Shown here in pieces: positions 3-53,309 of a stretch of DNA of 55,455 nucleotides (its first letter is position 1; each line of letters opens with the position of its first letter). The DNA comes from Perkinsus chesapeaki ATCC PRA-425. Taxonomy: Eukaryota; Protista; Perkinsozoa. The position numbers and the translations under genes are program-made. The notes below the pieces were generated by a model. It ran no database searches. It worked only from the letters and a program-made list of their open reading frames with translations, and was not told the DNA's origin. The DNA is taken from positions 1-55,455 of the forward strand of contig JAAPAO010000193.1 in NCBI GenBank assembly GCA_013115145.1, written 5' to 3'.

Positions 3-3000
3 GTGATACGGAGGAGGAGATATAATAGAAAGGAGTTTGATAGGAAATATGTTACTAGTGATACGGAGGAGAGTCGATGTTCGAATGTCATGTTACGGAA
101 TAGCTATTCGTATGAAATAGCTGATAGTCTATCAATGATAAATAAGATAACAGTAGATCTGCCTGATCAGGCATCGCTCATCGAGGAGCTTCACCAGCGT
201 GTACACCTTATTAGTAGGATAGTAGAACAAGATGACCAGGCGGAGATTCCAGACTGGAATGATGGGGACAACCTTCTTGTGTCGGAATGGCTAGCACGCA
301 ACGGCTTCGCGCTCACCGTAAAGGACGTGATGAGATCTACCGAAGGTAAGGATGAAGTATGCGACTTGTTGATTGGTCTTCACCACGCTTAAAATACGAC
401 TTGCTTAACAACTTGGAAGCCGCGAAATTGGATATCTAGGTTGGGCCTTTACTTCGGAGCTCTACATATCTCCAATGTGAATGATGAAATTGTATTATTG
501 CAGATGACACTATTCCCAAATTGATAAGCTTGGAGCGTTTCAATAACCTTGTGGAACTTGAGATGATGGGAAGTGTAGATGAATGCATGGAGGGGACTGA
601 GAGAGCCCTAAGTTTAGCTACAGACAAGTGGGACAGAAATTGTGTCAGTCACTGCAACATGTATGCGAGCCGTCACAGCAAATACGTTTATATTTTCAAC
701 TCGGAATTTACGACGCTGTTATAGTAGAGTATACTATAGGTAGTAGGTAGTATACTATAGTAGAGTACTACTACTATATATAGCAGTAGCTTCGGACTCT
801 CACGGTTCCGGCACCCAACACCGGCGGTGACCGGTGTGCTCATCTCTGTGCTGACATGACTAATCGGACGGGATATCTTCACTTCCACGCTCACAGTCGT
901 GAAGGAGGTGTTCCAAGAAAATATACAAGTGACATTTCAGTGTTGCCTTGTTAGGAAATTCGGCGAGGGTGTCATTCGAGGCGGATCTGGCGGTTGCGAA
1001 TGAGATACTAGATATTAAAAATGGTCTGGAGAAAGGAGATGTTAGTCTTGCTGTTGAATGGTATAAAGCTCATAGGAGTAGGATAGAGAAGCTGCAGAGA
1101 GAGGCAGAGAATCAGGTGGGAGAAGGGACTGCAGAAGGCAGTTGAAGACTTTGGGGTTATCAGCAATAGTTAGATTAATACTACCAACAGTTAGATTAAT
1201 ATTCCCAACAGTTAGATTATTATCACCAACAGTTAGATTATCATCCGTGATCGCGGTAATATGAAATGTAACATCGACTTCATAGTTATAGTTGCTGCTT
1301 TTTTCACGGTTACACGGCGCAAGCGACGCCAGGAATCGATGCTGTGCCACCTGGGACCGGAATCGGCAGGCGAAGTTATTTTATAAATACGTGTGAGATT
1401 GATTAATCGATTTCAGTTGATCAACCAGCCACTGTATTATGTGATAAGGGATCGAAACCTACAAGGAGATTATCATTTACCTTGTGATGGTCACCTATCT
1501 CAGGAAGCCCCAAAAGATTCTTCAGAGGTTGACTTGCTAGCTGCCTTACATCTCTACGAGTTAACCAGGATTATGGAAGGGTCCGATGATGATCGATTTG
1601 TCAAGGGAGTTGAATATCTCAAAAAGATTGCCTCAAGTGGAGACATCTCTGGTAGCGACCGAATCGTCATTCTCTCGTTCTCGCCGAACGATTCTAACCA
1701 TGGTGCTTTCAGATGCGATGATCGGTCGTATGTGTCGTTCTTTAAGTTGTGGTGTTCGGAGCTGCTGCCCGCATCGCCATTCCGTGGGCGAGGACACTTT
1801 ATGGTGCATTCGTAGCTCTTCCAGTTCGAAAGCTCACAGGTGGGAGTGACCGATTTTGGGGCGAGAAGAATCCAGGAACTGCGCACAGTTCACTGTATTG
1901 TTTCCGTGGTGTGCAAGCGAATGCCCGCCGCTTCAACCGGCTCAGCTCTCATCGGCAATTGGCCGAATGCTCAGTGCGATTTGGAGCAGAAGTAGGGGAT
2001 GATATACTAGTGGTTATTTGGGGTGTTAAGGTATTAGTAGATATTATGGAGCTGGTATTATTTTGGAAGTATTAATTGAATTCATGGGCATCTTCCATCA
2101 AATTGAATTACGACTCAAACCAATGATTGGACTAACTTTAATTGATTTGATTCGAAGCTGTTAATTTTGCAATCAGGATGAAAGCTGTGATTGATTCTTT
2201 CGACAAGTATGCCTCATTTGCCTATTATAGCGAGGAAATGGTCTCTGGAGGTGTCCCCTCCTCCGGGCCAATGTTGGAGAAGCTTGTCAGGGTAAGCTAC
2301 TTTAAACCTCCTCTCTGCCTCGACCATCGCTGAGATCTCTCACCGAATATAAAATGCCTCTTTGAAGTCAAAAATCTGCTGTTATTACCCTCGCCAACCT
2401 TACAAGTGACAACATTTGTACGTTTTTCGAAATCTTGTGGAATTGATGGTATATCACTATAATTGGTCCCCGGGCCGCCGGGCTGCATTCCCTTCTTCCA
2501 CTGGGTTGGCTTCGTAAAGGAACTGTAAGTTTATTGCCTGCCATCGGTCTTAGTCTGGTAACCTCCGATCGGCGGAAGCGTTCGGTTTTGGCAGGCTGGA
2601 ATTTTCGCATTAGCAAGTCCGACATGCCTGACCAATACCAACGTTACCTGTCCGTGCTGTGATCCTCTTTGCCATTCCTGGGGACTTCAACCTGGCATGG
2701 AGCATCCCACCAGACTGCGGAGTCACTTCGTATGCCCGTATACGGGCATGATAATGGTGAGTTAGGAACGCCCGTGGTGAGGTCGATGGCATCGGGGATG
2801 CTTGTCTCCACAGCTTGTATGTCACGCTGTGCGGACCTGCTCTGTTTTATAAAGCTTATCCAGTATCGCTTTATTCGGTTGAGGTTTTGCTGTGGGATCA
2901 TGGGCCGATAGGCTAGGGTCTACCTACTAGACTTCCTTGTATGTTCCGAAGCGCTTTCATATTGAGGCGCGGAGCGTGGTATCATTGATAGTAAGACATG

Positions 3001-3422
3001 GTCAGCTACACACGATAAGATACGACGGTTTTGGTCATATTCCGAATCGATCGACAAGCTAGTGTCGAATATAGAGCTAACATGGCTGAGCGATGGATTG
3101 AGTCAACGTTCTGTGTGTTTGGGCATGTGGGGCTCTCACGTATTCAGACCAACAATGCGTCCCTCAAAATGTTTGTCGTGCCTCGGTGTCTTGCGGGTTA
3201 AAAGGGAGCAGTCGTGGGGATTTAGGATGCAGATGAAATAGTCTGGTCACTCAGGACCAGGCATCGGCGAGTCCGACAGGTCATGTCCTTTCGGCGTACT
3301 GCCTGGGGCTCCTTGAAAAGGCTGATGGCTCCGCGAGATCTGGTGAGGATAAAACAGTAAGATGTCCGGTGACGGGCATGGAATATTCTATCCAAGATTA
3401 CACCAGGACTTTTTCCACTTGA
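3..3422 (+). CDS. MAEA: GID/CTLH ubiquitin-ligase subunit, MAEA/Fyv10(Gid9)-like; multi-exon, probably 5'-partial
   Basis: LisH-like LLVSEWLARNGFALTVKDV (ORF 3-392). CTLH-like ANEILDIKNGLEKGDVSLAVEWYKAHRSRIEKLQ (948-1145). CRA-like LHLYELTRIME...VKGVEYLKK (~1540-1630). Last exon reads GHVLSAYCLGLLEK...KTVRCPVTGMEYSIQDYTRTFST with TGA at 3420-3422, resembling the MAEA C-terminal CPxT motif. Confidence 0.65.
1165..1246. repeat. 21-bp tandem repeat, ~4 degenerate copies (AACAGTTAGATTAATATTCCC-like), intronic
   Basis: Four consecutive AAYAGTTAGATTA cores at 21-bp spacing; they produce the NLTVG repeats in minus ORF 1042-1350. Confidence 0.85.
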
Positions 3423-3866: not shown

Positions 3867-6800
3867 ATGATGTCTATCGAAGGAAAGTAGGCCTCCATTG
3901 TTTGTATTATATTCGAGTTATTCTAATAAAGAGTACACGCCTCAGCACGTCCGACAGGCGAGCACTGCATCACGACAAACGGGTGGAACTGTTTCTGTCA
4001 TTAGTGACTTGAAGTAGCGTCATCGAATTGAAGTTGGCTCCTCACATGCATCCTCTGGGCAGTAGTCTTCTAGTCAACGACAGTCTCTTCTTCATTGTGG
4101 GGACACTGCCCAACCATTGTTGGACTGTCCAACGCTCAGTGTCACACTGAGCGTGCGCCTGGTCTGCTGTTGTGTCGCACAAGCTCCGGTGCGATAACGC
4201 GTTACGCACAGCACTGTTGATATAGGGTGAGAACCAGGGTACGACGATGCCGGCAGAGCAGGGTTGTTCACACTGCTAGGAGGCAGCTAGCAAAGAAAAG
4301 ACCTCAGTTTAACGAAGGTCTCTCATAGATTCTCAACAGTTCATTCCCGACCTCGAACATTGAATGGATAAGGCCTCTCCTACGTCGACAGGCAAGAAGA
4401 CAACCGCCACATCATCGGTATGCGAAATCCTACTGCAAGCACGCGAAGTGTTGACAATCAGTGTCAGGCGGACTCCGGCTCCTCCGGGCGTCCAGACGCT
4501 GCACCGCTCAGCTCCTGTGCATCCGCTCATCTGGTCGGCCCTGATGACCGAGCTGTCCTCCCGGTGATAAAAGCCGCCGAGCTCGAGGCTGGCCCCAACC
4601 GCTTGGGCCTCATGTGCAGTTCGGGAATTTTCGAAGGCAAATTCATGTAGGAAGTCCGGAAATATCCTGCCACCCACCCAACTGACCCAGTTACGTCAAC
4701 GAGTACTCAACGGGAGAGGCATTCGGGAGTGACGAGTCTGCGAAGGACGTGTCGGTGTGAGTTTCGTTTTCTAGCCAGGTGTGACTTGGATTCCAGAAAG
4801 TCGTTTATCTACGAGGGGCTCCATCGTACCCGACTGTGGGGTTGCTTAACCGAACATTCTCGTCTAGGTACGTTGAAGGAGTGGATCTATCAACCAGACA
4901 CGCTACCGTCAGATTTCACCAGCAAACTTCCCAGTACTACATGGAGACTTTGAGTCAGGGGGAGCTGTCAGTTTCGAACTGACCCTCGACTTTTCATACC
5001 AAAGAAAAGCTCTGCTCGCGGCTAGCTTGGGATACTGACTGTTGACATCTGCGGAAACACTGCCTTTCTTGCATCTCATATATTTATCTTTTGTGTCAAG
5101 GAAGCACTATACTGCACTGCGGACCTTCTCGGAGCAACTGCATCATTTCCTTCTCGCTCTGTGTAAGGTATTTCCTCCAAGATCTGTCGCATCAGCACAA
5201 TGGGAGTGGTACTTGGATCAAAGTTCGGTAATGCTCCTTGCTTGCAACATGTTCATGGTGTCTCCCATGGTCAGGTGGGACCGGTGTGTTGAGCTAGCCG
5301 CTGGCCAGGAGATCACCATAGGAGGATCAATTTTGAAAGTAAGGACGGCACTGTGTGAATCACACAGTGTCATTCTCCGCTCCATGAGGCGGCCCCCTCG
5401 ACCGATGTGATCCCTGGAAAATGTTACCTCTGGTTTAGGTCACTGGTGGCCCGGCTAGTGATTCAGTGCTGGGTGAGTGGTTATCGATGTACAACCTGCG
5501 AAGGACGGAGCCATCTCTGGCGAACATGCACCCAGTGGGACGACGATAGCGAAGCTCACTTGTGTCCGGTTGTGATATGAATAATGAACGCTGGTCTCAC
5601 CGCATTAGACCGGGAGCTCTATATTGTCACTTTTATCAGCCATGGTTATCTTATCATCAACAGATCAACAGTATAGAACTGTTAATCTGTCGACTCGGCG
5701 ATTTAAATTGTTATTCCGGGATCTATTCGACCTTGTATCCCCGAGTGACTCCCGCTTATCGATATGCGCAAGTGGTACCAGTGGAATTTGCACTCAACGC
5801 CAGCCAAGGATATAGCATATGCTTCTGCGACTGGATTTCCTACTCTCCTCCGCAGAAGGTACTTTACTAGTTTAGGACATTCAGCTTCTCGTGGTCGACC
5901 TCAATGTCGAGTTGTCCATGCTGAAGTGCGATACCTTCTGTATTATCTGACGCGAGCCTATCGTGTTCCTTTTTGAGGGACAATGTTCGCGTGGCTACCG
6001 ATAACATCGGTCATCGGCTGTATAATGCATTGCTTTGTCTGAAGGTTCTTAAGAGTATCAAAAACTGCGGCGATCTACTTAAAGTATACGAATGTCGAGA
6101 CGAGATAACTGCGTCAGGTCAGACCGGGCTCGTCCTTTGTGAAAAAAGTGGCGAGCCGTCATTCAGGGCTATAATCGCAGTCAGTCGTGGTGCATCTGGG
6201 AACTTGAATTGCTTTGCCAAATCGCTGGATTGACTGCAATTTCTACTAGAAACTTTCTAGTACTGGGAAATGCAGAAAATCCCGCGGAGTTCTCTTGAAC
6301 TTCTCTGCAATTTTCTAAGCTGACCAGCGATATTAGCCCAACATGGNNNNNNNNNNNNNNNNNNNNNNNNNNNNNNNNNNNNNNNNNNNNNNNNNNNNNN
6401 NNNNNNNNNNNNNNNNNNNNNNNNNNNNNNNNNNNNNNNNNNATGGAGGGCTGTGTATAACCCAACATGGAGGGCTGTGTATAACCCAACATGGAGGGCT
6501 GTGTATAACCCAACATGGAGGGCTGTGTATAACCCAACATGGAAGGCGGCAGCCCTTCGGCTAACGGCCTAGAAGGCCACATTGGCGCGATCATATGGAA
6601 TACTGTTATATTCAGCCGATGCCTGTGCTGCACTTGGTAGCGGTTATGAATCTGATTGTCCAATGGCTATGCATGAGAGAACACCTCTCATAGGAGCTAT
6701 CTGTCAGTTAGTACCACACTGCTGCCACGGGAAGCTGAAAGACTTCGAAGAGCGATCTCCGAGATCCCCTCAATGTTCCCAGCACAGAGACTAAAAAGCA

Positions 6801-9800
6801 GCAACGCGTGAGGCTGCCTAGTCCGTCATTGCATCGTCCGATTCCTCAACCTTTAGCCGATTCATGGAATCCGTCCGATTGATGAACGGAGATGAGGAAA
6901 TTGCATGTAGCGGAGCCTCGTCGGAGCACTATCAGCACCTCGTCTCAGGCGTCCATTTGAGCGGCGGAACGATCGTACTTGAACCGAGCGAGAACACGGA
7001 AGACGCGATGTGATGTCCTCCATTCATATAGTGTACATAGAATGCAATTGTAGGCAACCTTCGGAAAATAGCCGTGTCGGATCTGTGGGAGGGAGAAACT
7101 CAGAGTTGAAGACAAGTACGGTCGAAAAGCTGATCACGTTGGCCTCCCTGTTGTTAATATAAAGGCGGCTATGGCAAGAACGTCCGCAAAGGGACACTAA
7201 AAGTCGCACCCTGTCGCGAGACCAGCAAGGAAGGAAAAACTGTAGGCAACAAGCGTGTAGTTACTCTTCCTCAACAGCTCGACTGTTTGAATCATTTGAA
7301 CATTGGAGAGTTTAATGAGCTTATTCATGCTAGTGATTGGCTATGGTTTCCAGCACGATTCTAAAATATATAATACTATAGTCTAAGAAGATCTAAATAT
7401 CGTAATAAAGTATACCTAACTTGAAGTTCACTGATTATGATAAAAATATAATGCTATAAGGAATATAATATTGTACTGTATGACTCGAACACATATTTGT
7501 GCAAGTCAGACCCGGTGCCATTGGACTAAACGAGAGTGCTTACAAATAGCATTTATACACGGAAGATATTACGCACACCTGAGCGAGGTAAGCCTCCCAC
7601 TGTCGATACATCTATCCATGGCAGCCACCCTGTTTCGTTGCGTTGGCGATTGCGAATTACAAGTCTCGTGTCTTCTGTGTCACAGTCTGTGGAGACGCAT
7701 GCTCTACCTGAGTCTTATGAACTGCTTTCAGCTTTCTATCGGGTCGAGTCAGACGGTGTGGCTGAAACTCAGCCGAGAACAGCCGCATTGGCTTCAGTTA
7801 GGGGACGAGTTCCGTATCGGAAAGTTGGTGAGTCGTGGGATACCCACGGAGGCGATGATCTCCCGGATATCACGCCCCATCTTATGTGGCTCATTACCGT
7901 GTAAAACTCAGGACTTCGACCATTCTGTGTAGAACATGAAGTTGAATGGCTCGTGGGCTCTGATTTGACTGCTCTACACATTTGGCTACAAATCGAAGTC
8001 TACTGCAAAGCAGCGTCGTAGGCTTCAAATGGTAGCGTACAATAGTTCGAGCCATAGCTTCAATATAGAGGGATGTACAGTGTACACTGTAGACCCTATA
8101 GCGACCTGATTAAAACGAACGCCATTCGGCTGTTGCTCCGGCGAACGGGAACGTTTCTAATCTTCTGGAAGTTCCTAGAGCTCAGTTCCTCTGAACAACG
8201 AGTTGCGGAAGGATCAAGGAATCCAATTCCAATTCCAAAGCTCTCAGACGTTCACAGCTTGTCGATTCCATATCGGAGTATGTCACGAGCAAGGCTACAG
8301 ACCTTCTATGGAGGACGAAGACATATGCATACAGGTAATTAGCCGAGGTCGAGCGACGCGAGCTACATCTCATCCACCTCAGGATCTCGCCATTTCCAAC
8401 TTGAAACCCTGTAGTTGGTTTGCAGTGTAAGCAAGTCTGCTGCCGGTCTTAGTATCTCCCTTGACGAGCGCTGTTGTAGATATGACGGACATGGAGGTCG
8501 CGAATGCGTTACTTTTTTACGAAAGTATCTGCATCTTTGCTTCATTGCACAACTCCACCAGCGAGGTGATTTGTTCGCACATCGCAGCACTGGGCAGACT
8601 TCTTCTCTGAGGAAGAGGCTTCTGCGTTTTCCCCGTCGACGATGAGATTGAGTGTGCTCTCAGGTGGTATTGACCGTTCCGAAGACATTCACGGAGATAT
8701 AATGGAATCCTTGCAAGGAGTGAGACTCCCTATGAGCAGTGCCATAAAAGCGTCACGAATCCTATGCTAGGCTTTCCAAGCGACAGACGAAGCCTTCATT
8801 CAGGAAGCAGGCAACAGGCAATGGTCTGTCGCTGCTGGTAGGTTTGCATGCCTTTTTTCGGCGGCCTGACTGGATGTCTTGTAGGTTGCGTGGCAGTGGC
8901 CGTTCTCATCATCGGTTCAACAATTTTCTGCGCGAATACTGGGGACTCGCGGGCGGTTCTATCTAGAAATGGAAAGTGAGTTCGAATGAGGCATAGTGCT
9001 TCTCATTGGCAACGAGTCGTGGCTCTTGGCTCGCGCCAGCAGTTCTGGCCCAGCACGCAGAACTGCTAACTTTGCGTCACAGTATATATCCCTTCCGTGT
9101 ACCTGCCAAGGGATATATAGCAACATTTCCACTCTACAGTATATTGCTTGTAGAGTAACCTCCTCTCTGTTCGAATCACCGTCGCCTCAATCTTGGAATA
9201 TCGATTGGGCGACTCTGGGACCCAGGGCCTGGAATCCAGAATCTGGATATCCCGACCACACAGCCTGCACAACCATCCGATCATCTATGGAGTGCCTTCA
9301 TTTCGTGGTGTGATTTTGCGACCATAGCGGTAGGGGACCATAGACAGCATTCTGATTATCTCCGTTGAGTGTCCTCGTTACGGTATTCGGCCGCGTTCTA
9401 CAGGGCGGTCGAGTTGTCTAACGACCAACGTCCATCGCGCCAAGATGAGTTCAAGAGAATCAAAGATGCGGGAGGATTCATCTTCTTCGGAAGAGTTTTG
9501 GGAAGGTGCGTTAGACCGCCCCTCACCTGCTGATGAGTTACAGGCTCGCGGTATCTCGCGCTTTTGGGGACATAGAGTATAAAACCGGCCTGCCGGATGA
9601 TCAGTCCCCCCTGGTCATCTGTGAACCCGAGATCCATGCTGATACTCTTCGGGTAAGCTCCGCCCACTGACGGATATTCATATATGACTCTGAACCAATA
9701 TTTGTGAACACTTGTTGACTGCGGTACGACTCGTAGCCTAAAAATTATGGTGCTGTCTACCACTCGGAATACTTGTGAAGCTAGACTTGGCGACGGAATC

Positions 9801-40143: not shown

Positions 40144-43100
40144 TCATTTATCTAAAAACTTAGTAGCTTGTTCGGTAGCTTGCAGTAAATCAACCTCCTG
40201 ATTACTCTTGATGGCGGAGATTAGGATGCCATCATCTCCTCCGCTCGTGGTTATTGCTGTATAACGTTCAACATCTGGTACACTCAAATGAGTTATTCTT
40301 CTAATGCCAGTAGACATATCCCAAATATGGATATCACCATTATTAGTAAGAACCAATAAACCGTATTTGTCAGAATTAGCAATGCCAGTTATTTTATTTG
40401 GTTCATGATTATAATTACCAATCTTAGCCTGGCGATGCCAAACACCATCATTATCAAGAGATAACAAGTATAAATTATTATCAGGTGTGGAAACAGCCAA
40501 ACTTCCCTCTGATAAGAATGCCATCTTCTCGACTTTAACAGGCATAGCCTGAGAACTGCCAGTGGAGGGATCTATGAGTCCTTCAGTCCCATTGGCAACC
40601 ATCACTTTTCCATACAGGCTGATGATATCACTCGGGTTCAGTTCCCGGTCAGGGTATCTTTTCGGCCAAATAGATATGCCATCAGTAGCAATGATTGCGT
40701 TGTTGTTGTCAACGGCCAAACCAATTGGAGTAAAAAAAGGTGGCAACGGTTCGGTGACAGAAGTAGAGCTGAAAACCGGGCCCGACAGGCCGGTACCGGT
40801 GGGAACGCCAGCGCACACGAGGATCCACCAGAGAAGTCTAAACGCAAAATGGGAAGGACAAATAAGGATAAATACAGTAACTTACCCTATGAACCAGCAA
40901 AATATGACAATAAAAGAAATTTGTTTATAAATAGACCAAGGACGGATGAGATACCGTGAGATACTGGCATGACGGCCGGTGTGATGCTGCTCGCATGGCT
41001 TGCGGAGAACGGTTTCGTCATCATCTGAACACCTGGGAAGCAGTGAGTTGGAAATATAGAAGGGATATCCTACCTTCTCGAGGATGATAACTCTTCAACA
41101 CTTTTACCAAAGCTTTTCACTTCATCATCCAGTCCACGGGAACGCTACACGAAGCGGGGGAATACGCGGACTGGCAGAGGGAGGAGACTCACCTTGTCAA
41201 AACACGATTCCTGCCATCTGTCTTCTGGCGCCTTCCCCTCACCGTAATGGACTTCCCACCATGTTCCTGAATGCACTAATTTCCATGCAGTAAAGAAAAA
41301 CCTCGCAGCAGCGGAAAGATTGGGCTTTGCTCGGAGGATCGAGTAACAGACGACGAAAAATCTGTGTAACTCACCTAAATCACCGCAACCGATCTCAGGT
41401 TTTTTGAGGCCTTCTTCCATCATGGTCATATCCAAATCACCTCTGAAAGTAGCCAATACCGCAGGTGTGGATGTTATGTATGAAAGTCACCTAGTTCGCT
41501 TAAAGTCCTTCTCAAGGTCAGTGATCCTGTTCTGACCATGAGCGGTGATATCATTCCAGTGCCTTCGCTCCGCCTTGATCAACTCTTCAATAGCGGTTTC
41601 TCTTCTTTGGCATTCGGTCAAATCGGTATCATCACCGCAATGTTTTTCGCGGTCTTTGTGGTCCCACTCGGAGTCGCAGGGCTTGCCAGTCTGAGATAAC
41701 GACGATCTTGACCATCGACAAGTAAGCCGTCACGACCATATTAGTTTTTTACTACTTCACGACAAATTCCAGGACAAAATATTACATTGTAAATTTTTTT
41801 ATCAAAAATTACTAGTATTGAAAAATGTTAAAAAATATATCAGAAGCTGAAAACACGCAAAGTATTTTTTCCGTTTATTGTCAATGAGTCACGGGAGCTA
41901 AGGAAACTTACCTCGATGCCACCCTCAGCCATTTGGCGTCGAAAGAAGTCATAGAAGGGGTTTTCATGCATTAGGATATCTTAACGGAAAGCGAGTACGA
42001 AGTGAGTGGTATTGGCATGAACCCACCCGAGGTCATACTGACAATATTGAACTTGCCGGGTACGATGCCAACTGACTCTAATCCTTGCAATATCAAATAG
42101 AGGTACCAGATAGCGTGTAGAGCGATGGAAGCCAACGCTACATCCTCTCCTGAATAACAAGACATCCGAGGCAAAAAACCCTTTCAAACCGATCGACGAG
42201 AGCCCACCTATAGACGTCCAGCCGGCATAGTCCATAGTGGCTGCGGCGGCCGCCGATAAAGGTGTCAGATAAACCAATACTAACATAACCAGAAGCTCAT
42301 TATAAGTGGAAATGATGATATCCATTCGGAGATGAAGCATTGCAGCAGTTGAGATAACAACAGTGAATGCCCAAGCTGCCCATGGCTCACGATCCCCCAT
42401 CATGGTAGACCTGATGAATGCGTTGAGGAAACGCAAGATTGCAAGTTTCACTTACCCCATCGCGAAGTCTGAAAGTGTCATCAACATTTGATTGGTGGCC
42501 AATACCATAAAGACTCGAGCGTAGGCATCATAACCTTGCCATGATTTCTGGATGCTTTCGAAAAGTGAAAAGTGTGAAACTGTGTATCTATCAACATTGG
42601 TATGAAATGCTCGGCAGGCGGATCAGCCCGACTTATCATTTTCATTGTGGAACATCATACCGTTCTCTCCGACATCCCTCGCGTCCTCGGGGGAGGAGCC
42701 AGCAGGACTAGACAGGTTTTTGGATAATCTCCGAAGGACTGGGATTCTGAAGATCTTCTTTAATGGATTGCATTCGAAGCGCTGAGAGGCAGAAATCAAG
42801 AATATGGAGCACCCTAAAGTCCCTATGTCATCGCGGAAGCCATGAAGCATACAACAAGTATGCGCCGTTGTGCATCCTAAACCGGTACTCTAAAAAAATT
42901 CTAGTGAGAGAACTTCCTTCACTAGAAATATATTTTCCTCTAGCTTTCTTTCAAGAAGAAACGTGAAGATCACAGCATCTGAGACGCTGCATCTCGTATT
43001 CCACTACGGTTTAAAATTCATCGCAAGGAAGACTTACCTCCATTGTATCTGCCGCATTGTCAATATCAGACATCGCTGGCAAGGGAAGCCTAATGGATGC

Positions 43101-43875
43101 AGATCACCAATGCAAAGGTGTCATATTGCGACTACCTAAGCCAGCGAGTGAGAAGTTTGACTTCGAGGGATTGTGCAATAATGGATGCGTGAAGGGAGAA
43201 TGAAACAGAGAGTAGCAGTAGGATAGTACAGATCGATAAGTTGAGAACCCTGAAATACATAGCTTGTAATACTGTGCAACAGAAAGACTTACCAAATGAA
43301 CCAAAGCCAAGGCGGAACGTCCTTCGGATCTGGTATATTAGGCTGAAGCATGCCGTCATAAATTGAGTGGATACTCACTGCCAGGGCAACTGAGTTCACC
43401 AGCAAGTAAGTGTCCATCCTAGAAATGGTGAGGCCAAAGAGATCTCTGAGATCTTCCCTATAGAGGCCGATCTGAAGCACAACCAACTTGTCACTATGCA
43501 TCCAGTTTATAATAACCGGTTGCTCGATACGAACTTTGCGGGCCGGAGACTTGATTTTCCCACAGGATCTCTGGTCGACAGTGAATCCGACTAAAGAGTG
43601 TGCTCTTGAACAGAGAAGCCTGTCAGTGGATGCATTTGCCCTAGGCTTGGAAGTAATGTACTTAGCATTGCTGACTGACTACTCGGATTTCCCTTGATAC
43701 TCCTTGAAGAGTAGGGACTTACTTGATTTATTCGCATATCTTGAACTTGATGGACCATCCATTGCCTCAACGTCTGATCAAGAATGAACGCGGCTTTGTT
43801 ATAGGAGAATAGTGCTCCTGCGGTAGTGCACGCCAGGGAAGCGCCTGAAACTGCTGCTGCAGTTGCGGCTGCCAT
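40144..43875 (-). CDS. Multi-pass membrane protein, paralog 1: Orai-like 4-TM core, extra TMs, coiled coil, TM and a beta-propeller-like C-terminus
   Basis: Start MAAATAAAVSG...LFSYNK at 43875; LYREDLRDLFGLTISRMDTYLLVN; LHASIIAQSLEVKLLTRWLR; KSWQGYDAYARV; GDREPWAAW. RPWSIYKQ...CWFIG splices in frame (GT ~40879, AG ~40837) to LLWWIL and the 224-aa ORF 40144-40818. Confidence 0.7.
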
Positions 43876-45489
43876 TATTAATATACATGCTAACAACAAG
43901 AAGTGTTTTCAAGTAGACCTCCATCTCCGCCTCAGGCGGTGTTGACCAGCCCCTGATGTGTCGGTTTTTTTCGAGTGCGAAAACCACTTGTTTCAAAGGC
44001 TATCGCTTCCACAGCACGAGCCTGAATTTTGTTCTGGAATCATTCCAGAATTGTCTCTCCTAGACTTCAGCAATGTAATACCGGTGTGACTGGCCGAATC
44101 CTCTCGAATGCTGCTGCAGTCGGCGGTGCCTGATGACGTGGACCGCCCCATCATGCGCGCGCAAAGCGTCGATTACCATTGAGGATCGGACAAATACTAG
44201 TAAAAATCGAAAATAGCGTGGCGTGCCTAACGCCCCGGAGCTCAAAACTACGGTGCTCGAACTATAGCGGAGGAAGAATGGAAAACGGTTTTGTTCGTGT
44301 TGAATGCACGCCTCGAACTTCGCCGGCCCAAAGGCTACTTGGCTAGTCTGGTGCTTTCGCATAATTGTACACTCAATGTGGGTCGGCGCTGCGAGGCGTA
44401 AGCTTCTCGAACACTGGCGACAGCCCTGGAAGAGACGCCAGCTTAGCGCGGTCTATCGCCCTAGAGCAGACGTCCGGCGATGTGACCACCACTCTCTCCA
44501 AGTCAGTCCATAATTCTATAAAAGCAGCCTCAGGGCCTGAGGCTCAGGCTGCCAGCCTGCCCTGGACAGAAGTTGTTCCTGGGAATGTAAGCTCGTGGAT
44601 CGAGCCTCGATCATCGAGGTGATTGAAAATGTGAACCGCTACCATCAGCCACAGATTCTTCGAGTGTACCGCTTAAGTAATGCTACTCATGGACAGCAGA
44701 CCAATACATTCTTCCCACACTCTCATACACTTACATATTGAAAGCCGAAAGCGACTCGATAGCGCTGTTGCGCTAAACTAAGATTGGAGGCAGCGCGCAC
44801 AAGATACCTGTTTCGTGACACTGCATCACAAGAAGGTTACACGATGTAACCATCATCCTCGGACCAGGGGCCCTGGCTGTTGTTTCCTAGGGCATTTCCG
44901 AGCCGCAATGAATGAAAAATCCCAGGAGCGCCACTGACAGTGTCAGCGATCACTCAGAGTTATTCACTGAGTGACTTTCACTCTGACAAACGAACTTGTC
45001 GTCTCACTCTCCAATAGTCAACCTGCATGGTAGAATGACGCATCTGATGTACTGCGCGGCAGACAAGCACCGGGAAGTCCCAGGCTCACACTTCGGTTGG
45101 AAAGGAGACTGACATTAGCAGAGTGCAAGGAGGAGAAGTTCTCCTGGAGAACTCAACAACAAACGCTATCATTCCCTCAACTGCCAACCATGACCAGCTT
45201 TAACACCGAGACTTTATTTTGAGAACGCTCGAAACTGGAGATTAATCGGCTTAGAACAGGCAGCGAAATCCTTCGAGTTTTCGCTAAACCAAGAATGTTA
45301 GGTCCACACCGTCAACTGTAAACGGACAGACAGCCCGCTGCTCCCAAAGGAAAAGCATCGTTACTAAAGTTACAGAAAATAAGGTACTTATGAGACATTG
45401 TGAATAGGTTTAAAATAGCAATAGAATGATAGCCATACTACATTTCATACGAAATATTGATATAAATAGCAAACGCGATACGAAAAGAT

Positions 45490-48400
45490 TCATCGTATCT
45501 GAGCATTCACCTGAACGGCTTGATGATTACTCTTGATGGCGGAGATTAGGATGCCATCATCTCCTCCGCTCGTGGTTAACGCTGTATAGCGTTCAACATC
45601 TGGTACACTTGAATGAGTTATTCTTCTAATGCCAGTAGACATATCCCAAATATGGATATCACCATTATTAGTAAGAACCAATAAACCGTATTTGTCAGAA
45701 TTAGCAATACCAGTTATTTTATTTGGTTCATGATTATAATTACCAATCTTAGCCTGACGATGCCAAACACCATCATTATCAAGAGATAACAAGTATAAAT
45801 TATTATCAGGTGTGGAAACAGCTAAACTTCCCTCTGATAAGAATGCCATCTTCTCAACTTTAACCGGCATCTTAATCTCCCGACCGTTTTCGTATTCAAT
45901 CAGCCTGTCCTCGCCACATGCGACAGCAACGGTGTTATTCAAATACTCGACGTCTGAGATGTCATGACCGAGCTCGAGCCGATCACTAACACGTGGCCAC
46001 AAACCAACTGCATCCGCTATAATGAGCGAGTCGGATAATGAATTACGTGAAGTCATACCCACAGGTACGAAAAAAGGCCCTGGAGCGCCGACGACAGGTA
46101 CTGCACCTTCAACTGAGGCTCGTAAATCTTTGCCAGTCGGAATGTTCAGGAGATCAAGCACGCACCAAATGATGCTGAAATATGAAACTACACAGCTTGT
46201 TTGATCGACCGATCCCCCACTTACCCAACTGTCCAGGCAACCACGACGACGGTGGAGGCTTGTTTATAGATGGACCATGGTCGAAGAGAATAATGCTGGA
46301 AGTCCATAGGAGCTCTGTGGTGACGATGACGCTTACTGTCCTTGCATGAAGACGTAGTAGACGTCGAAGTTGTCGAGGTCGATGAACTTGAGGATGAAGA
46401 TGATGATGACTCAGAGGAGCACTTAGTTGAGCCTTCGGACCTGTAAGCACAGCTACAGAGCATACAAAAGTCTACTGTATATTATCGAAGAAAGTCGATG
46501 CCAACAAATAGGGGATTAGTATGACTAAGCGGCAGCAAGGCCTCAGTCAGAGCGAACCAGACAAAAGATATCATTCTAACGACGTGCGAAGTTTCTTCTC
46601 TTCGGGTGTATTCACAGTCTATCAACATATGCACCGTTGTTCAGATCATCACTGACGTCTCCCTCCATGTTATACCTATCCTCTGGTTCTATGGATCCCA
46701 TCTCCAACTTCTCCACAGACTTCTTGAATTCCCTCACTTCATGTTCGAGACGATCGGTTTCGCCCGCGGAGCTTTCGGAGCTGAGGCCGCGAGTGGACGC
46801 AGACGACAGCGTGTCACTCTGCCAAAGGTAGCATCATCGTAAACTCTTCAGACAGGATAGTGTAGTGTCAAGAGAGGCATGCCCAAGGCAGACGTACTGA
46901 TACCAACTTACCATAGATCTCCGAAGTGCTGGTCTCCAACGTATATCCCCAGTGACACTATTAACGTAATAATCAGTGCGAGAACCCTCAGGACCTGAAA
47001 TGAGACATACTTCCCCGCCGGGGAAAGTTTCACCGGAAAATTCCCGTCGGAAATTATCTTCAAGCACGATCGGGAGCGTGCGTGCTTTGGAACGGGAAGT
47101 GAGAAGAGAATCATTTCATAGTTAAAATTTTCCTATCACGTGAGAAGTGAGAAATGACAAATGTACATCGCGGGCATGTTTTGGTGGGGCTGTAGTCGGA
47201 AAACAAATCCGATAGAGGAAGTTGTGGGATTCCAGAGTGTATATGTCACACCGTTTCTGACTCCAGTCTCACGAAAACGTACCCGTGAAGTACAAGTAAT
47301 AAATTCAGCGATCGAGGCCATTGGTCTACCGTTGGTCTTAGGCCGACCGTAGTGCAAGATTACAAAACTCGGGAGAGACGATGCGGAACGATCCTGACTC
47401 AAAACTATCGCCGCTTAAATCCTTACCGTTCGCTGAACAATCTCCAGCAAGCTTCACCCAATCCTGCTCCGACGATGTTTCCATCGATGAAGTGTCATCA
47501 CATACGTCATCATCATTCGAACTTTGCTCCGTTCGCTTAGCCAAGTCAAATTCATTCCTGGGATACATTAGTACAAGATTGCTCAACCAGCTTCGCTGAT
47601 TCAAGCTACTAAAACCGCCGAATCAAATTCGGTGTATCCTATTCAATGAGCTGCCCATCAATAGGTTCAAGGATATAGGTTAAGACATACTGTATTGTAT
47701 ATCCTTCGACCTACCTTCAGATTCCTATGTAAATGGCTAGGCAAATCCTGGACAAAAAGGGCAATTGAACAAAAAGGACAATATCAACTTCGGGAACGGA
47801 CTCTCTATTGAATAAACTAACCTAGTTATGGCCGTCAAACGAATAAAGAAAAATTTAGTCCTGACTCAGAACAGAAGTAGAATTCCTACTGCGGCGATGA
47901 CGAATACCACATTCGAAGTGCGAATCATTGCTTTTCAGCGTGATACGTGAAGCCCTAGCTATTACCTGATTTTCTGAAAATCGCTTTTCAAAGCCGCCAG
48001 TCTCCCATTCGGCATTCTTGGCAGCTTACTATCGTCCGCAAAAACCTTCGCCAATTTACTCTCTTCTTCTTCACATTTCCCCAGTAATTCCCCATCTGGA
48101 GTAGAGCCCTTCGTGAGGTCGCTGCTGCCCCATAGGAAATCGCCCGGATTCTCCGCCTACCAAAAATGTATACTGTATTAAACTGATACAAATGTAAACT
48201 AATATAACTAACATTTCACAACTCCAAGGTAGAAGAGGTCTTGAACTGCAGCAATTTTTATTGGTATTAATGAAACCATTTGGGGTTGGATACCCTAACT
48301 TCTAAAACGACAGTTGACAGTTCGAAGGTACAGGAGTAACGAAACCATTCGTGCTCAAAAGTTTTCCTCTGAGAAGCGACACCAGTTCCCCAAATTACTA

Positions 48401-51400
48401 CATCAATTCCAAGATCCCGTAATTCATCCTGGACAAAATGCTGCATTGAATTGTCACTCATAACATCTGAAAGAGGAGCGCGAGAATCCAACAGGAGAAA
48501 TCGGCAACAAGAAATGTTTAATTTTATTAATTCTGTGGTGCTCATTACCTGAAGAGATATCGACTGTATTGAACTTTTCTGGAAGGCCGCCCCGAGACTC
48601 CATGGCTTGGGCAAATACGAAACATATCCAAAGGTCATTTATAATAAATGATATTAGAGCCCATACACGACCTGAGATAAGACAGTCAAGGGGAACAAAC
48701 TACAAAAACGAAATGTCATTTCCGAAATATGTCATAGCGAAGGAGACCAGAAGAGACCGGTGGACAGGAAATCCTGGAAGGAGATTTCACGGAGCGTTGA
48801 CCGGAGATACTCGACCCTCATGATTTTAGATTTAGCCTTGTTTTGAGTAGGTAAAAGAAGATTCTGATTCCTGTGATTCTAGTTGCAAGCCATCCGAGCG
48901 AGATATTCTATCAGCCCATAGCCTTCGGAGTTAAATTACTATTTAAAGCTCTGCTCCTCTGATGGTGAAGTTCATCAGGGAGCCAGGACTTCATTGACGC
49001 CAGCGCAAAGCTAACACTAAAATCCAATGGCCCTCAGAAACTACGACTTTTGTCGATCTCCTTAGCTCTACATAACTACAATGAATGGTCCAAAGTGTTA
49101 TGAACAATACTGTAGGCTAATTTCTGGTAACTCTTAGAATCGCATAAAATAGATATTATATGGCATCTCTTCCCCTCCTCAAGATTTTTTATTCTATTAA
49201 CATGATTGTGGCTACGACGGTAAGCTATGACAGGCTACCGTGGGCCGGCAACAATCGATCATTCACCGCCGCGATGCCATCGCATCAACTACTAATACAG
49301 AATATACCTTCTCAAGATTCAAGTCTTGAATTTGGAGAATCTCAAACCCTCCGCACCCAAGCTACTACCTGCAACAAGCCAGCCGGCGTAGTCCAGTGTC
49401 GCCGCCACAGCTGCTGTCAATGGTGCAGCATAGATAAGCGCTACCATAACAATCAACTCCAACTTCGACAAAGTCAAGTTAATTCTAAAATGTAGCATCG
49501 CACCAGTTGCCACAACAACGATAAATACCCAAGCAGCCCAAGGTTGGCGGTCGCCGATCAGTGTGGACCTAATTGAAACTATCTCGGTCTGGGAAGCGCC
49601 TCTGAGCACAAGAAATCTAGAAATCCTCGAGCCGTCATTTCATCTCAGTACTTTCACATCCATCTGGATGAGACAGCTACTCGTCAAATGGTCGTACGCG
49701 ATTTCCTGGGCTCGTAGATATGCGGACACCTCCGTACGTGACCCTGAGTCTCACCGTTAGCAGTCGCTAAGGTCGCACGAGACCTTAGAGCGTCAAGTAT
49801 ATAACGGATGGGGTCCGCGGAATATTCACGAACTCTAGTCAATGAAGTTTAACAGTAACGGAGGGCTTTGAAAGTAGTATTGCTAACCTTCCCATTGTGA
49901 TACAGCACCGATCCGATCACTCTTACCCCATAGCAAAGACGCATAATGTCAATAATAATTGATTCGTTCCAACAGCCATGCATACCCGCGCATAAGCATC
50001 GTAACCTTGCCAGGATTTCTGCACATGCTCGAAGAGCTTAAAGTGAATGTGGTACCTAGGAAGCATTCAAGTTAGGCGGGCCGAGTGAAATGAAACTCCA
50101 GCTTCGTCGAACTATCGGCCAACAAAGGGAGATCTATCCGAGGTCCTCCGATAGAACGCCGTTTATACGAACCGAGGATCATCAATGACTTAACTTAATT
50201 TCGAGTCAAAACACTTTTTGACAAGCTTATCGTACAAAGAGGCAATACAAAGAGATGAAAAATCAGATTTAATGGCTCATCGAGGAATATCAGAATTCCA
50301 GAGCAGTCTTCTCACTGCTGTCGAATCCTAGGCTATACTACCTCAAGCTGTAAAGTATTAGATTTCAAATATCTCGGAATATCTTAGGTCGACCTTCGCA
50401 AGATGCTACATAGGTTGAACTTACATTCGATCTCCTTCCCCACTAACTCTCCCATCTTTATCAACCTTCGAGAATGCATCCATATCGGCCTTCTTACGAC
50501 GAGGATCGAATCGCTGCAGGCCGGGAATCCTCAGAATGGATGATACTGGACAACACTCGTAATCCTGACAAAGTCAAATAGACCGCTTGCATGAACTTCG
50601 TGTAATAGTTTCACAATTTTACACCGGCTGTATTTCAGAAAGCTGATCAGCTCTGTAACACAGTTAATGTAGTTTAAACGCTATATAGAATTCAGAGGGC
50701 AATTTTCTGGTGATTTTTTATTGCAATCGAAGCTCATTCTCAATATTTGGTATATTATTACTTCAACAGTAGCAGACGCAGCCGCTATATCCTCAGTTCG
50801 TGGCAAAGGCAACCTGACAATGAGCAATTACCGCACGCCCCGAAATGACATTTCCAATGCCATTTATTATTTCCCACACTTCAGTGCTGAGAAAATTCCC
50901 CGGAAATGGCTGCCTGATCTGACGGTAAGTTGTCGGAAATCTCACACACACGAGCTCCAAGAGAATACTAACTATAAAATAACAAGGTGCAACCCTGTTC
51001 TTGACCCGGCTATTCACGCACTCAACTCGAATGGAGAGAAGAACACCGTATCATTCAGCTATGGCCAATACGGCCTTATGGGCTGATTCTTAGAGCTCTC
51101 GAAATTCCGACAATTTAATTCTCGCTGTCCGAACTGGGAAAAGTGGTACATTCTCTCTCACAGATTTTACAATAACGAAACGGAGGGAGTTAAAACTGAG
51201 GCGCCGAAACCTTTGAAGTTCAAAAACAGTTGAAACTCGTCTCTGTTTTTCGCATTGCATGGAAAATTCCTTCTGGTTATTCTGAAAAGTTTTCCGATAT
51301 CAATTTTGCAGCTCCTCCGCAGCCGCGAAAGCTCACTGCGAGGCACTAGCTGCTGATACCAAATGTAACTATTGAGAATCCACCTCTGTGACGTTGGAAG

Positions 51401-53309
51401 TTTTCTTACCGAAACTTCCTCTTAGAACGGAGTCAAAATTTTCCTAGGGTCGAGAAGTTTTCCTACCAACCAGCACTCCCCAGTACCTCAGCCATTGAGT
51501 AAGCAGTTTAACTACCATAGCTTGGGCTGTGATCGATGCATGCAGTGATAACCAAACCGATATTAACAGGAAAATTGTAGCACCAGAAAGATCGAGACAC
51601 CTAGCAAGGGAACAAGATCCTTCGTTGTAGTTGTTGTCGACCGACTAGTACCAGTGCTGGGCCAGCCGGTCGGTCAGGCAGCAGTGCGCTACTGCTAGTT
51701 GGTTACCAAAAAGGTTAAATCAGCCCTGCACTGGGCGAAGTCAAATTTCACTAATCGCGCATGAGTTTTTTTTCCCGTTTTCCTTCAGGTTTTCCGACTG
51801 GCGACACGTTAGTACTACTGTACTTGATAAGCAGTTGTTCCTAGTCCTGGAGGGTTCGGATTTCCCATTCTAACCTAGCCTAAACGGGGAACCTGAGTCG
51901 TCCTACAGTGCGAACCAGGTCTACAGCACCAACTTTGAGTCGAATGTGAGTTTAGTATGAACTGGCGAAACAACCATTGCTGATCACGAATATGCCGAAT
52001 CGCCGAGGCCCATTCGGTATCCTACTTTTTATAATTCTTTCATGGCAATGGAAGATTGCAACAATACATGAAAACTGTACGAACGGGCTACCTAAAGTCT
52101 CCATTGGGTGTTGAAATGCTTGCTTTGATGTGAGAGTTGGAAATTTCTATCTCAATGAGATTGGCTATGATCAGCCAGTGGCTCCTGTGGGTTACTATAC
52201 CCGCGAAACTTCCTTTCCTCGGTAAGATATGGCCGATAGACCGAAGGCATACAGCCCGACACAGTGAAATAGAAAGTAGTAAAAACGAAACAAAGAATCG
52301 TCGGTAGTAAATCGACACAGTGAAATCAGCTACAGGCCCGGCCACAGTAAGATAGAATAAACCAACTAACGTTCCCAATTTCCTAGACAAAAGCAATCTA
52401 TAATTTTTCCGGAATCTACAACCCGACCTCGTCCTTTTAGTACCACATCCACCAAATCCATGGGGGATTGTTGTCCGGCAGCACACCATCGTAAAATAGA
52501 GCAATACAGAAGCCAAGCATTAAGGTGTTAACAACCAGATAGTTATCCATCTTAGAGATAGTCAAACCAAATAGGTCTCGAAGATCCTCCCGATACAGGC
52601 CGACCTGAAAAAGTCAACTTAAACCGTTTGCTGCCGCTCCGGAGACTCATAAGAGTTGCAGTAGTGAGTGACAGTTCACGGACGATGAAAATGATGCTCA
52701 TGAAAAATTGGCGTGCAAAGCGAACCGACCCTGTGAGACAGTCTCAACAAACATTCGTCTATTGTGATAGTAAAGTTCGCCAAACACTTCAAATATTAAT
52801 GATATCTGTCAGACAGTATTAATTTAATAACTTGATAACCATTAGATTTATATATTATTTTGATCTCATTAGATTTATATATTATTTTGATCTCATTACC
52901 TTTATATATTATTTTGATCTCATTAGATTTATATATTATTTTGATCTCATTAGATTTATATATTATTTTGATCTCATTAGATTTATATATTATTTTGATC
53001 TNNNNNNNNNNNNNNNNNNNNNNNNNNNNNNNNNNNNNNNNNNNNNNNNNNNNNNNNNNNNNNNNNNNNNNNNNNNNNNNNNNNNNNNNNNNNNNNNNNN
53101 TCATTAGATTTATGTATAATTTCGGTCTCATTAGTATAATTGTACCCCTCCAGCGCCCCTCCTCCTACCTGCTGTAACCTGATGTTCTGTATTTGATGTA
53201 CTTTCTGTTGCCGTAATGTATTATCAAATACAAACACATCTTTATTATAAGAAAATAAAGATCCGGCGCCGTTCGCCAGAGCAGCACCAGCTGCCGCTAA
53301 CTCAGCCAT
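45490..53309 (-). CDS. Multi-pass membrane protein, paralog 2, same architecture, longer introns and a WW-like / Ser-Thr-rich insert
   Basis: Start MAELAAAG...LFSYNK at 53309; VGLYREDLRDLFGLTISKMDNYLVVNTLMLGF (~52450-52610); LHASITAQAMVVKLLTQWLR (~51490-51600); KSWQGYDAYARV (~50000); GDRQPWAAW (~49550). RPWSIYKQ...AWTVG splices in frame to IIWCVLDLL and ORF 45490-46161. Confidence 0.7.
52840..53134. repeat. 27-bp AT-rich minisatellite (CATTAGATTTATATATTATTTTGATCT)n spanning an assembly gap, in intron 1 of paralog 2
   Basis: Six units at 52840-53001, N run 53002-53100, then a degenerate unit. Confidence 0.9.

Follow-up and report, generated by a model that had tools for sequence, protein, structure and literature searches.

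The stretch of DNA considered here, referred to as the window, comprises positions 1 to 55,455 (55,455 nucleotides, nt) of contig JAAPAO010000193.1 from Perkinsus chesapeaki ATCC PRA-425 (assembly GCA_013115145.1), a clam parasite and shellfish pathogen. On its minus strand, between 40144 and 53309, stop-free segments form two series with an identical order of conserved blocks, which make up two multi-exon paralogs with common exon order and motifs, named here P1 (40144-43875) and P2 (45490-53309). Our results show that P1 and P2 are intact tandem paralogs belonging to a protist membrane-protein family that has no Pfam match and is present in at least nine copies in P. chesapeaki, and they suggest that the membrane core of these proteins may be a remote relative of Orai, the protein of calcium release-activated calcium (CRAC) channels, joined to a cytosolic segment, a seventh transmembrane (TM) helix and a probable β-propeller. 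When the open segments of P2 were used as tblastn queries, the same exon order and motifs were recovered in P1 and in a third paralog, P3, on contig C3459, with E values (1e-14 to 1e-90) that place the paralogy of the three genes far above chance. An earlier note on this DNA, made from its letters, had described two minus-strand paralogs with shared exon order and motifs, and both the GT-AG gene models and the tblastn comparison bear this out. All 16 exon borders of P1 are GT-AG in an exact protein-to-genome mapping of P0001, and the 15-exon model of P2 was guided by the paralogs and by the Perkinsus olseni ortholog P0064. The joined P2 translation was used for local checks of frame, hydropathy and pairwise identity only; searches and fold predictions used single exons or database proteins. 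The two genes are laid out as follows.

40144..43875, minus strand: P1, whole gene; 16 exons from 43875 to 40147, with the stop codon ending at 40144; NCBI FOL47_003090, protein P0001, 862 amino acids (aa)
Minus strand: P1 exons 1-8, 43875-43723, 43678-43517, 43471-43293, 43249-43136, 43089-43038, 42781-42633, 42587-42456, 42410-42208
Minus strand: P1 exons 9-16, 42149-42027, 41979-41912, 41690-41491, 41442-41375, 41266-41193, 41144-41074, 41032-40886, 40837-40147
45490..53309, minus strand: P2, whole gene; model built here, 15 exons, all GT-AG, 2574 nt, 857 codons, 0 internal stops
Minus strand: P2 exons 1-8, 53309-53169, 52604-52444, 51600-51487, 50813-50762, 50564-50425, 50055-49927, 49568-49369, 48671-48549
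Minus strand: P2 exons 9-15, 48466-48402, 48156-47966, 47557-47427, 46994-46912, 46818-46676, 46440-46225, 46174-45490

The annotated exon 2 of P1 (43678-43517, 162 nt, 54 codons) is missing from P2, P3 and the P. olseni ortholog P0059, and skipping it preserves the reading frame; it may be specific to P1, or else an artefact or a choice of annotation. At the neighbouring locus the NCBI annotation splits P2 in two, with P0066 representing the N-terminal half and P0002 the last exon together with downstream pieces. P0066 omits the exon for the second TM helix (51600-51487, 114 nt) and, through an internal acceptor, part of exon 7 (TM4), and P0002 continues past the last exon with pieces at 45149-45021 and 44540-44376. 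Inclusion or skipping of the 114-nt exon 3 leaves the frame unaffected, and the exon is found both in P0064 and in P0062, a P. olseni protein to which we return below. The P. olseni ortholog P0064 favours a single P2 gene ending at 45490.

The split annotation, together with the presence of an assembly gap of unknown length within the P2 locus, could be taken to mean that the propeller exon is a separate gene, or that the P2 locus is a mis-join across the gap. The structure of the last junction argues strongly against a separate gene. In both paralogs the exon that carries the RPWSIYKQ motif closes with a run of twelve hydrophobic residues and a final GG, the donor sequence is GTAAGT, and an acceptor lies 48-50 nt downstream of the donor (with slashes at the exon borders, ...TTCATAGG/GTAAGT...TTTAG/ACTTCTC in P1 and ...ACAGTTGG/GTAAGT...TTTCAG/CATCATT in P2). 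The hydrophobic run continues in frame beyond the splice (…CWFIG-LLWWILVCAGVPTG in P1, …AWTVG-IIWCVLDLLNIPTG in P2), and removal of this GT-AG intron, which has the same position and phase (phase 2) in both genes, completes the seventh TM helix from its two halves. The exon order is identical in P3, and the core and the region beyond TM7 are found in one product in P0001, in P0064 and in complete transcriptome open reading frames (ORFs) of the distant relatives P0096, P0098 and P0099. The in-frame splice from the RPWSIYKQ-TM exon into a β-rich last exon, as the earlier note had it, is upheld as a conserved phase-2 intron, and a separate propeller gene is very unlikely. As for a mis-join, the gap lies in a repeat in the first intron of P2.

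52840..53130, no strand assigned: 27-nt minisatellite with the assembly gap 53002-53100 inside it, P2 intron 1

Tandem Repeats Finder (TRF) delimits six copies of period 27 with 97% matches at 52840-53001; the unit reads CATTAGATTTATATATTATTTTGATCT on the plus strand, and unit-like sequence is also present on the far flank of the gap. The flanking exons are exon 1 (ending at 53169, donor GTAGGA) and exon 2 (starting at 52604, after a CAG acceptor), no reading frame spans 53002-53100 and no coding sequence is touched. Since the gap is intronic, is crossed by no frame, and the join of exons 1 and 2 (…RLQQ/VGLYRED…) is identical in the gap-free P1, P3 and P. olseni proteins including P0064, the finding is unaffected by it, and we give a mis-join next to no credence. 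A second run of N in the window, at 6347-6442, lies away from both genes.

The domain that follows TM7 is encoded by the last exon of each gene, and is a small propeller, probably with five blades.

45490..46174, minus strand: P2 last exon; second half of TM7 and predicted five-bladed β-propeller
40144..40837, minus strand: P1 last exon; second half of TM7, predicted β-propeller and stop codon; 65% identical to the P2 domain

An AlphaFold2 (AF2) model of the P2 last exon (m617f690a744d, built with 19 homologs) has 17 strands, a predicted local distance difference test score (pLDDT) of 81.4 and a predicted template modelling score (pTM) of 0.79. Foldseek matched it to WD40 and BBS propellers at E 2e-7 with probability 1.00, gave at least 500 matches at E<=0.001 and returned propellers throughout the best 50. 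In VIA structural comparison the top match was the five-bladed glutaminyl cyclase 3MBR (Z 17.2, root-mean-square deviation (rmsd) 3.3 Å, 191 of 236 residues), then 3NOK (Z 16.1) and NHL and GH43 propellers (Z 12-14). These results agree with the β-propeller-like domain that the earlier note had proposed for the last exon. In searches with single exons, Pfam propeller families match the last exons weakly (E 0.008-0.1) and the TM exons have no Pfam match. When a profile of the domain was searched against 1.84 billion representative proteins, its true relatives numbered only five, each of them Perkinsus-like. An hhalign comparison of a three-sequence propeller profile with the distant members P0099 and P0081 gave no significant match, and the homology of the propeller is therefore established only for the clade of P1, P2 and P3 and its close relatives. 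The likeness of the P2 model to bacterial glutaminyl cyclases (3MBR, 3NOK), to GH43 and to the six-bladed NHL propellers is one of fold, at only 8-15% identity, and implies no function.

Within these last exons lies a stretch of 347 bp (minus strand, P1 40199-40545 and P2 45524-45870) that blastn aligns at 97.1% identity with no gaps; outside it, the DNA of the two genes can hardly be aligned. At the corresponding place in the propeller, the P. olseni orthologs of P1 and P2 also share a nearly identical stretch (83-100% over windows of 30 residues). In this part, identity between the orthologs of the two species is only 27-73%. This pattern suggests that the neighbouring copies have undergone repeated gene conversion, in P. 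chesapeaki as well as in P. olseni.

45524..45870, minus strand: putative gene-conversion tract shared with P1 40199-40545 (blastn)

Upstream of the last exon, the conserved blocks of the two proteins can be assigned to exons as listed here.

52444..52604, minus strand: P2 exon 2; conserved helix LYREDLRDLF on the cytosolic side, continuing into TM1, which carries Asp at the proposed position of the Orai filter Glu; 91% identical to P3
51487..51600, minus strand: P2 exon 3; TM2 (…SVWLSLHASITAQ…LLTQWLR), absent from NCBI P0066
49927..50055, minus strand: P2 exon 6; juxtamembrane WQGYDAYARV and TM3 (…MAVGTNQLL…)
49369..49568, minus strand: P2 exon 7; TM4 and TM5 (hydropathy peaks 257-275 and 284-302)
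48549..48671, minus strand: P2 exon 8; TM6 and the conserved GGLPxKF motif
47966..48156, minus strand: P2 exon 10; cytosolic helical or coiled-coil segment
46912..47557, minus strand: P2 exons 11-12 (47557-47427, 46994-46912); WW-like module (W…YYVNSVTGDIRWRP)
46225..46440, minus strand: P2 exon 14; Ser/Thr-rich linker, RPWSIYKQ motif and first half of TM7
43293..43471, minus strand: P1 exon 3; LYREDLRDLF helix and TM1 (…RMDTYLLVNSVALAVSIHSIYDG…)

The strings quoted in the earlier note are present in P2, KMDNYLVVNTLMLGFCIALFYDGVLPDNNPP within 52613-52440 and YDAYARVCMAVGT within 50066-49926. Hydropathy analysis of P2 gives seven peaks (residues ~66-88, 102-131, 227-245, 257-275, 284-302, 310-333 and 621-639), and the four-TM core supposed in that note has accordingly to be replaced by one of six TM helices, with a seventh later in the chain. 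An alignment of 40 family sequences shows in the N-terminal part an LFSYN motif and the LYREDLRDLF helix that leads into TM1, followed by SxWLxLHASIxAQ in TM2 and an invariant R-L-P, a TM2-TM3 loop of about 100 residues with conserved YE and RxP, the block HFxLF…WQGYDAYARV before TM3, and GLPxKF after TM6. In the TM3 region, D/E229 is acidic in 38 of the 40 sequences and R233 is kept in 39. The AF2 model of P0062 contains counterparts of several of these elements: a helix at 2-86 that corresponds to P2 exon 2 (pLDDT above 90 from about residue 60), helices at 402-428 and 435-461 that match P2 exon 10 (pLDDT 81-90), and two strands at 478-497 in the WW-like region.

In P2 about 30 residues separate the two Trp of the WW-like module, as against about 20-23 in WW domains, which also have a central YYxNxxT strand and a C-terminal Pro, and the module is shortened in P1; the Pfam WW model (PF00397) matches only three of the 40 members (best E 0.014), and the family profile gives weak, sub-threshold matches to the PRPF40A WW domain (E 0.03) and to Pin1-type domains (up to 0.1). 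WW modules are normally intracellular, and from this and from the six core helices the N-terminus and the coil/WW part would be placed in the cytosol and the domain after TM7 outside or in the lumen. By helix count, therefore, the propeller likely faces outside or into a lumen, and its probable extracellular location, also put forward in the earlier note, holds as a predicted topology.

The resemblance of the core to Orai appears at the level of predicted fold. Our fold evidence comes from P0062, a 573-aa protein that is the ortholog of P3 in P. olseni; its TM1 exon is 91% identical to that of P2, and AF2 models its TM core with pLDDT above 90. In a wide VIA search with this core, Drosophila Orai (4HKR_A) ranked first among 48,161 PDB chains (Z 10.9, rmsd 3.1 Å, 146 of 165 residues), the second row standing at Z 9.6 with rmsd 5.5 Å, and in a second VIA comparison, made on Foldseek's candidates, 4HKS_A reached Z 12.1 and 4HKR_A Z 10.9, with the next unrelated chain at 8.8; by the calibration of VIA, values below about 13 for helical bundles may reflect a common arrangement, through which helical models typically reach a best value of about 14. 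The rmsd of 3.1 Å holds over 88% of the chain, against 4.3-8.5 Å in neighbouring rows of like length; rows 6-7, with shorter alignments, lie at 3.1-3.8 Å. The predicted model shows four helices folded like M1-M4, the first reaching far into the cytosol, and adds two further TM helices to the core.

Human E106 and Drosophila E178 are equivalent, being the invariant glutamate at the outer end of M1 that forms the Ca2+ selectivity filter of Orai. In the VIA match the first aligned pair is model residue 52 with chain residue 144; with this offset of +92, and provided the helix is gapless, Asp86 of P0062 falls on Glu178 of Drosophila Orai. This is the very register that the earlier note had drawn from motifs (K65…G78-F79…D86 against human K85…G98-F99…E106), and its placement of an Asp at the E106 position agrees with the structural alignment under the same proviso. 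Published work identifies Glu178 as the selectivity residue of Drosophila Orai (PMC11085791). Language-model comparisons point in the same direction. In ESM-Atlas, the clusters closest to residues 1-365 of P0062, their own excepted, are an oomycete one at 0.88 and one of streptophyte Orai at 0.87 (188 of 256 features). P0098, a member known from a transcriptome that shares about 30% identity with P0062, lies closest to the oomycete cluster (0.90) and to two Orai (PF07856) clusters (0.89 and 0.87), its ten best named matches all falling within one family or clan, and for both proteins Orai is the nearest named family; scores below 0.9 are, in the tool's own wording, leads only. Because individually weak lines of different kinds converge on a family that had been named beforehand, we favour an Orai-like fold for the core; such a fold appears fairly likely, and would probably reflect remote common ancestry. 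Specifically, we put at about 0.6 the probability that the core is a remote, rearranged relative of the Orai superfamily, an estimate drawn from fold and language-model similarity and not from sequence statistics.

A considerable body of results weighs against such kinship. The Orai family model (PF07856) has no match in P0001 or P0003 at E<=10, none among the 40 members at E<=1 and none on single exons. A six-frame scan of the genome with the same model detected no canonical Orai; its sole match, at 20.6 bits against a cut-off of 25, was a transporter-like ORF. This sub-threshold signal (C3120:9267-9413, in a 347-aa multi-TM ORF, L006 940-1983) is read as a chance match in an amino-acid-transporter-like protein. 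Searches of PDB sequences with the family profile and with phmmer found no Orai at E<=10 and only weak WW matches, and phmmer with the TM1 exon likewise found no Orai at E<=10, and gave a chance match to MAGE-A4 at E 0.1; the similarity of the TM1 motif to Orai is therefore not significant as sequence. A profile word-search toward intermediates with a precomputed PF07856 label led to nothing but strong members of the family. Foldseek with the core model against the PDB reached at best E 0.3, with Orai absent from the best 50, and the VIA Z scores of 10.9-12.1 lie within the range for which that tool issues its warning. The fold evidence, moreover, derives from an ortholog of P3 and not from the window's own proteins. 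Along TM1 the conservation moment reveals no single conserved face, and the column at the filter position is variable, with K in 11, E in 7, D in 5, A in 4, G in 4 and C in 3 of the 40 homologs, and other residues in the remainder. The earlier note had itself counted a non-conserved TM1 Asp against its proposal, and as a conserved selectivity filter this Asp is not borne out. In sum, these proteins are not recognised by the family model of Orai and lack a conserved filter glutamate: of the Orai-like core first proposed, the fold-level part stands (first rank of 4HKR_A, the ESM clusters and, if gapless, the register of D86 on E178) and membership of the Orai family by sequence does not.

These results would suit a family of lineage-specific seven-TM proteins of receptor or adhesion type with no link to Orai, whose likeness to it would be that of a common up-down four-helix membrane bundle with long helices. 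Every sequence-profile test and Foldseek are negative, helical models typically attain best Z values of about 14 through arrangement alone, the ESM scores below 0.9 are leads, the filter residue varies and the core has six helices and not four. Against this stands the agreement on Orai of the motif register, of the top structural match and of the nearest language-model clusters for two divergent members, as does an rmsd of 3.1 Å over 88% of the chain where rows of similar length give 4.3-8.5 Å. We consider an unrelated receptor a serious but unlikely alternative to remote kinship with Orai. Much less probable is the opposite view, that P1 and P2 are true divergent Orai channels of CRAC type in which the TM1 Asp acts as the Ca2+ filter. 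It could draw on the Asp that P1, P2 and P3 carry at the position matching Drosophila Glu178 by structural register, on the Glu or Asp that many clades have at this position, two residues later or four earlier, and on the failure of the six-frame scan to find a canonical Orai in this genome. However, Lys occupies the column in 11 of the 40 sequences and Ala, Gly or Cys in a further 11, Cys is the residue in the P1 orthologs of P. olseni, and the Pfam model fails; the Orai glutamate is conserved even in divergent diatom forms (PMC11085791). In addition, STIM arose near the base of animals (PMC7016017), and store-operated gating therefore cannot be assumed. Since the outer acidic residue of TM1 is not conserved family-wide, Orai-type Ca2+ selectivity is unlikely as a property of the family as a whole. 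A CRAC-type Ca2+-selective pore is accordingly not supported, and ranks well below the Orai-like fold in our estimation.

The order of parts is the same in each protein. A conserved cytosolic helix (LFSYN…LYREDLRDLF) leads directly into TM1, the first of six core TM helices, of which the first four are predicted to pack like Orai M1-M4; a cytosolic helical or coiled-coil stretch and the WW-like module come next, then TM7 after RPWSIYKQ and finally a predicted five-bladed propeller, which by the number of helices would lie outside the cell or in a lumen. The likely mode of action would be that of an oligomeric channel or of a channel-derived receptor, in which the outer propeller would bind a ligand or a surface, and the coupling to partners would fall to the cytosolic coil/WW part. 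Judged from these models, P1 and P2 are candidate channels or receptors of an undescribed type. It is a bolder and rather improbable proposition that they might be self-contained, STIM-independent channels of Orai type, with a propeller that senses a ligand or the host surface and gates an oligomeric pore through TM7 and the coiled-coil/WW part.

The family to which P1 and P2 belong extends well beyond the window. Two homolog searches returned 43 and 60 homologs, respectively, and a family profile run against the genome detected exons on six contigs that resolve into nine genes.

Nine genes by contig: C1015 (two), C3459, C102, C1850 (two), C3424 (two, in tandem), C299
Seven further paralogs: C3424:750-7117; C1850:72204-74990 and 91873-96454; C102:64951-67531; C299:43730-49658; C3459 ~40900-47760

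The C3424 genes form a tandem pair (750-3158 and 4317-7117), and some 17 kb separate the two on C1850. Several copies are also present in P. olseni and P. marinus, and further members are many unnamed proteins of 500-850 aa from eukaryotic contigs of environmental assemblies and several transcriptome ORFs. In UniRef and NCBI, P0001, P0059-P0066 and others bear the name 'Pumilio domain member 4', and others are called 'WW domain-containing'. No Pfam PUF match is present in any of the 40 members, and we discard a Pumilio identity, with PUF repeats undetectable in these proteins, as an apparent propagated misnomer. Literature searches on Orai with Perkinsus, alveolates or dinoflagellates, and on the record name, turned up no account of such proteins.

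In alveolate parasites, motility, secretion and invasion depend on the entry of Ca2+, through channels that in several lineages are largely unidentified. A large family with an Orai-like predicted core, an outward propeller and cytosolic adaptor modules provides concrete candidates for testing. If the remote kinship with Orai is real, the architectures known for this fold would be widened beyond the four-TM, STIM-gated form; on the bolder proposition of propeller-gated channels, perkinsids and related protists would possess a receptor-operated Orai branch, a candidate for the unidentified route of Ca2+ or cation entry in alveolate parasites. If the similarity of fold is superficial, the genes would still represent an undescribed, expanded and modular family of surface proteins in a shellfish pathogen, with what appears to be ongoing gene conversion in tandem copies.

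Among known systems, the closest comparison is with Orai/CRAC itself (PF07856; 4HKR, 4HKS). The proteins described here resemble it in the predicted packing of TM1-TM4, in the long cytosolic extension of TM1 (Z 10.9-12.1, within the range cautioned for helical bundles) and in language-model neighbourhood, as well as in a cytosolic N-terminus and an acidic residue at the outer end of TM1 in P1, P2 and P3; a small/aromatic G-F pair in mid-TM1 falls at the register of G98-F99, a likeness resting on the string quoted in the earlier note. They differ in two extra core TM helices, in the conserved TM2-TM3 loop of about 100 residues, in the lack of any family-model or other sequence match to Orai, in the non-conserved filter position, and in the addition of a coiled coil, a WW-like module, TM7 and an ectodomain. 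The basic positions that line the inner pore of Orai are not matched, as in the conserved Asp67 that stands at the place of human K87. Orai forms a hexamer whose M1 helices line a central pore; the models used here are of single chains. A STIM partner is not to be expected outside animals and their close relatives.

Orai is widespread but patchy in eukaryotes (PMC7016017, PMC11085791), and the diatom and oomycete Orai classes (PMC11085791) share with the Perkinsus family the character of non-animal, in their case stramenopile, forms far from the animal and plant type. Whereas those classes keep the Glu178 equivalent and were found by Orai similarity, the Perkinsus family lacks it and is unrecognised by the Orai model; the oomycete cluster, which is the closest non-self cluster in the Atlas (0.88-0.90), is not implied to be identical with the published classes. 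A further parallel is Jiraiya/TMEM221, a divergent Orai-related branch in animals without the Ca2+-binding residues (PMC7016017). It is animal-specific and small and has no WW module, TM7 or propeller, unlike the proteins described here; compared by description, it provides a precedent for proteins of Orai fold that may not be Ca2+ channels.

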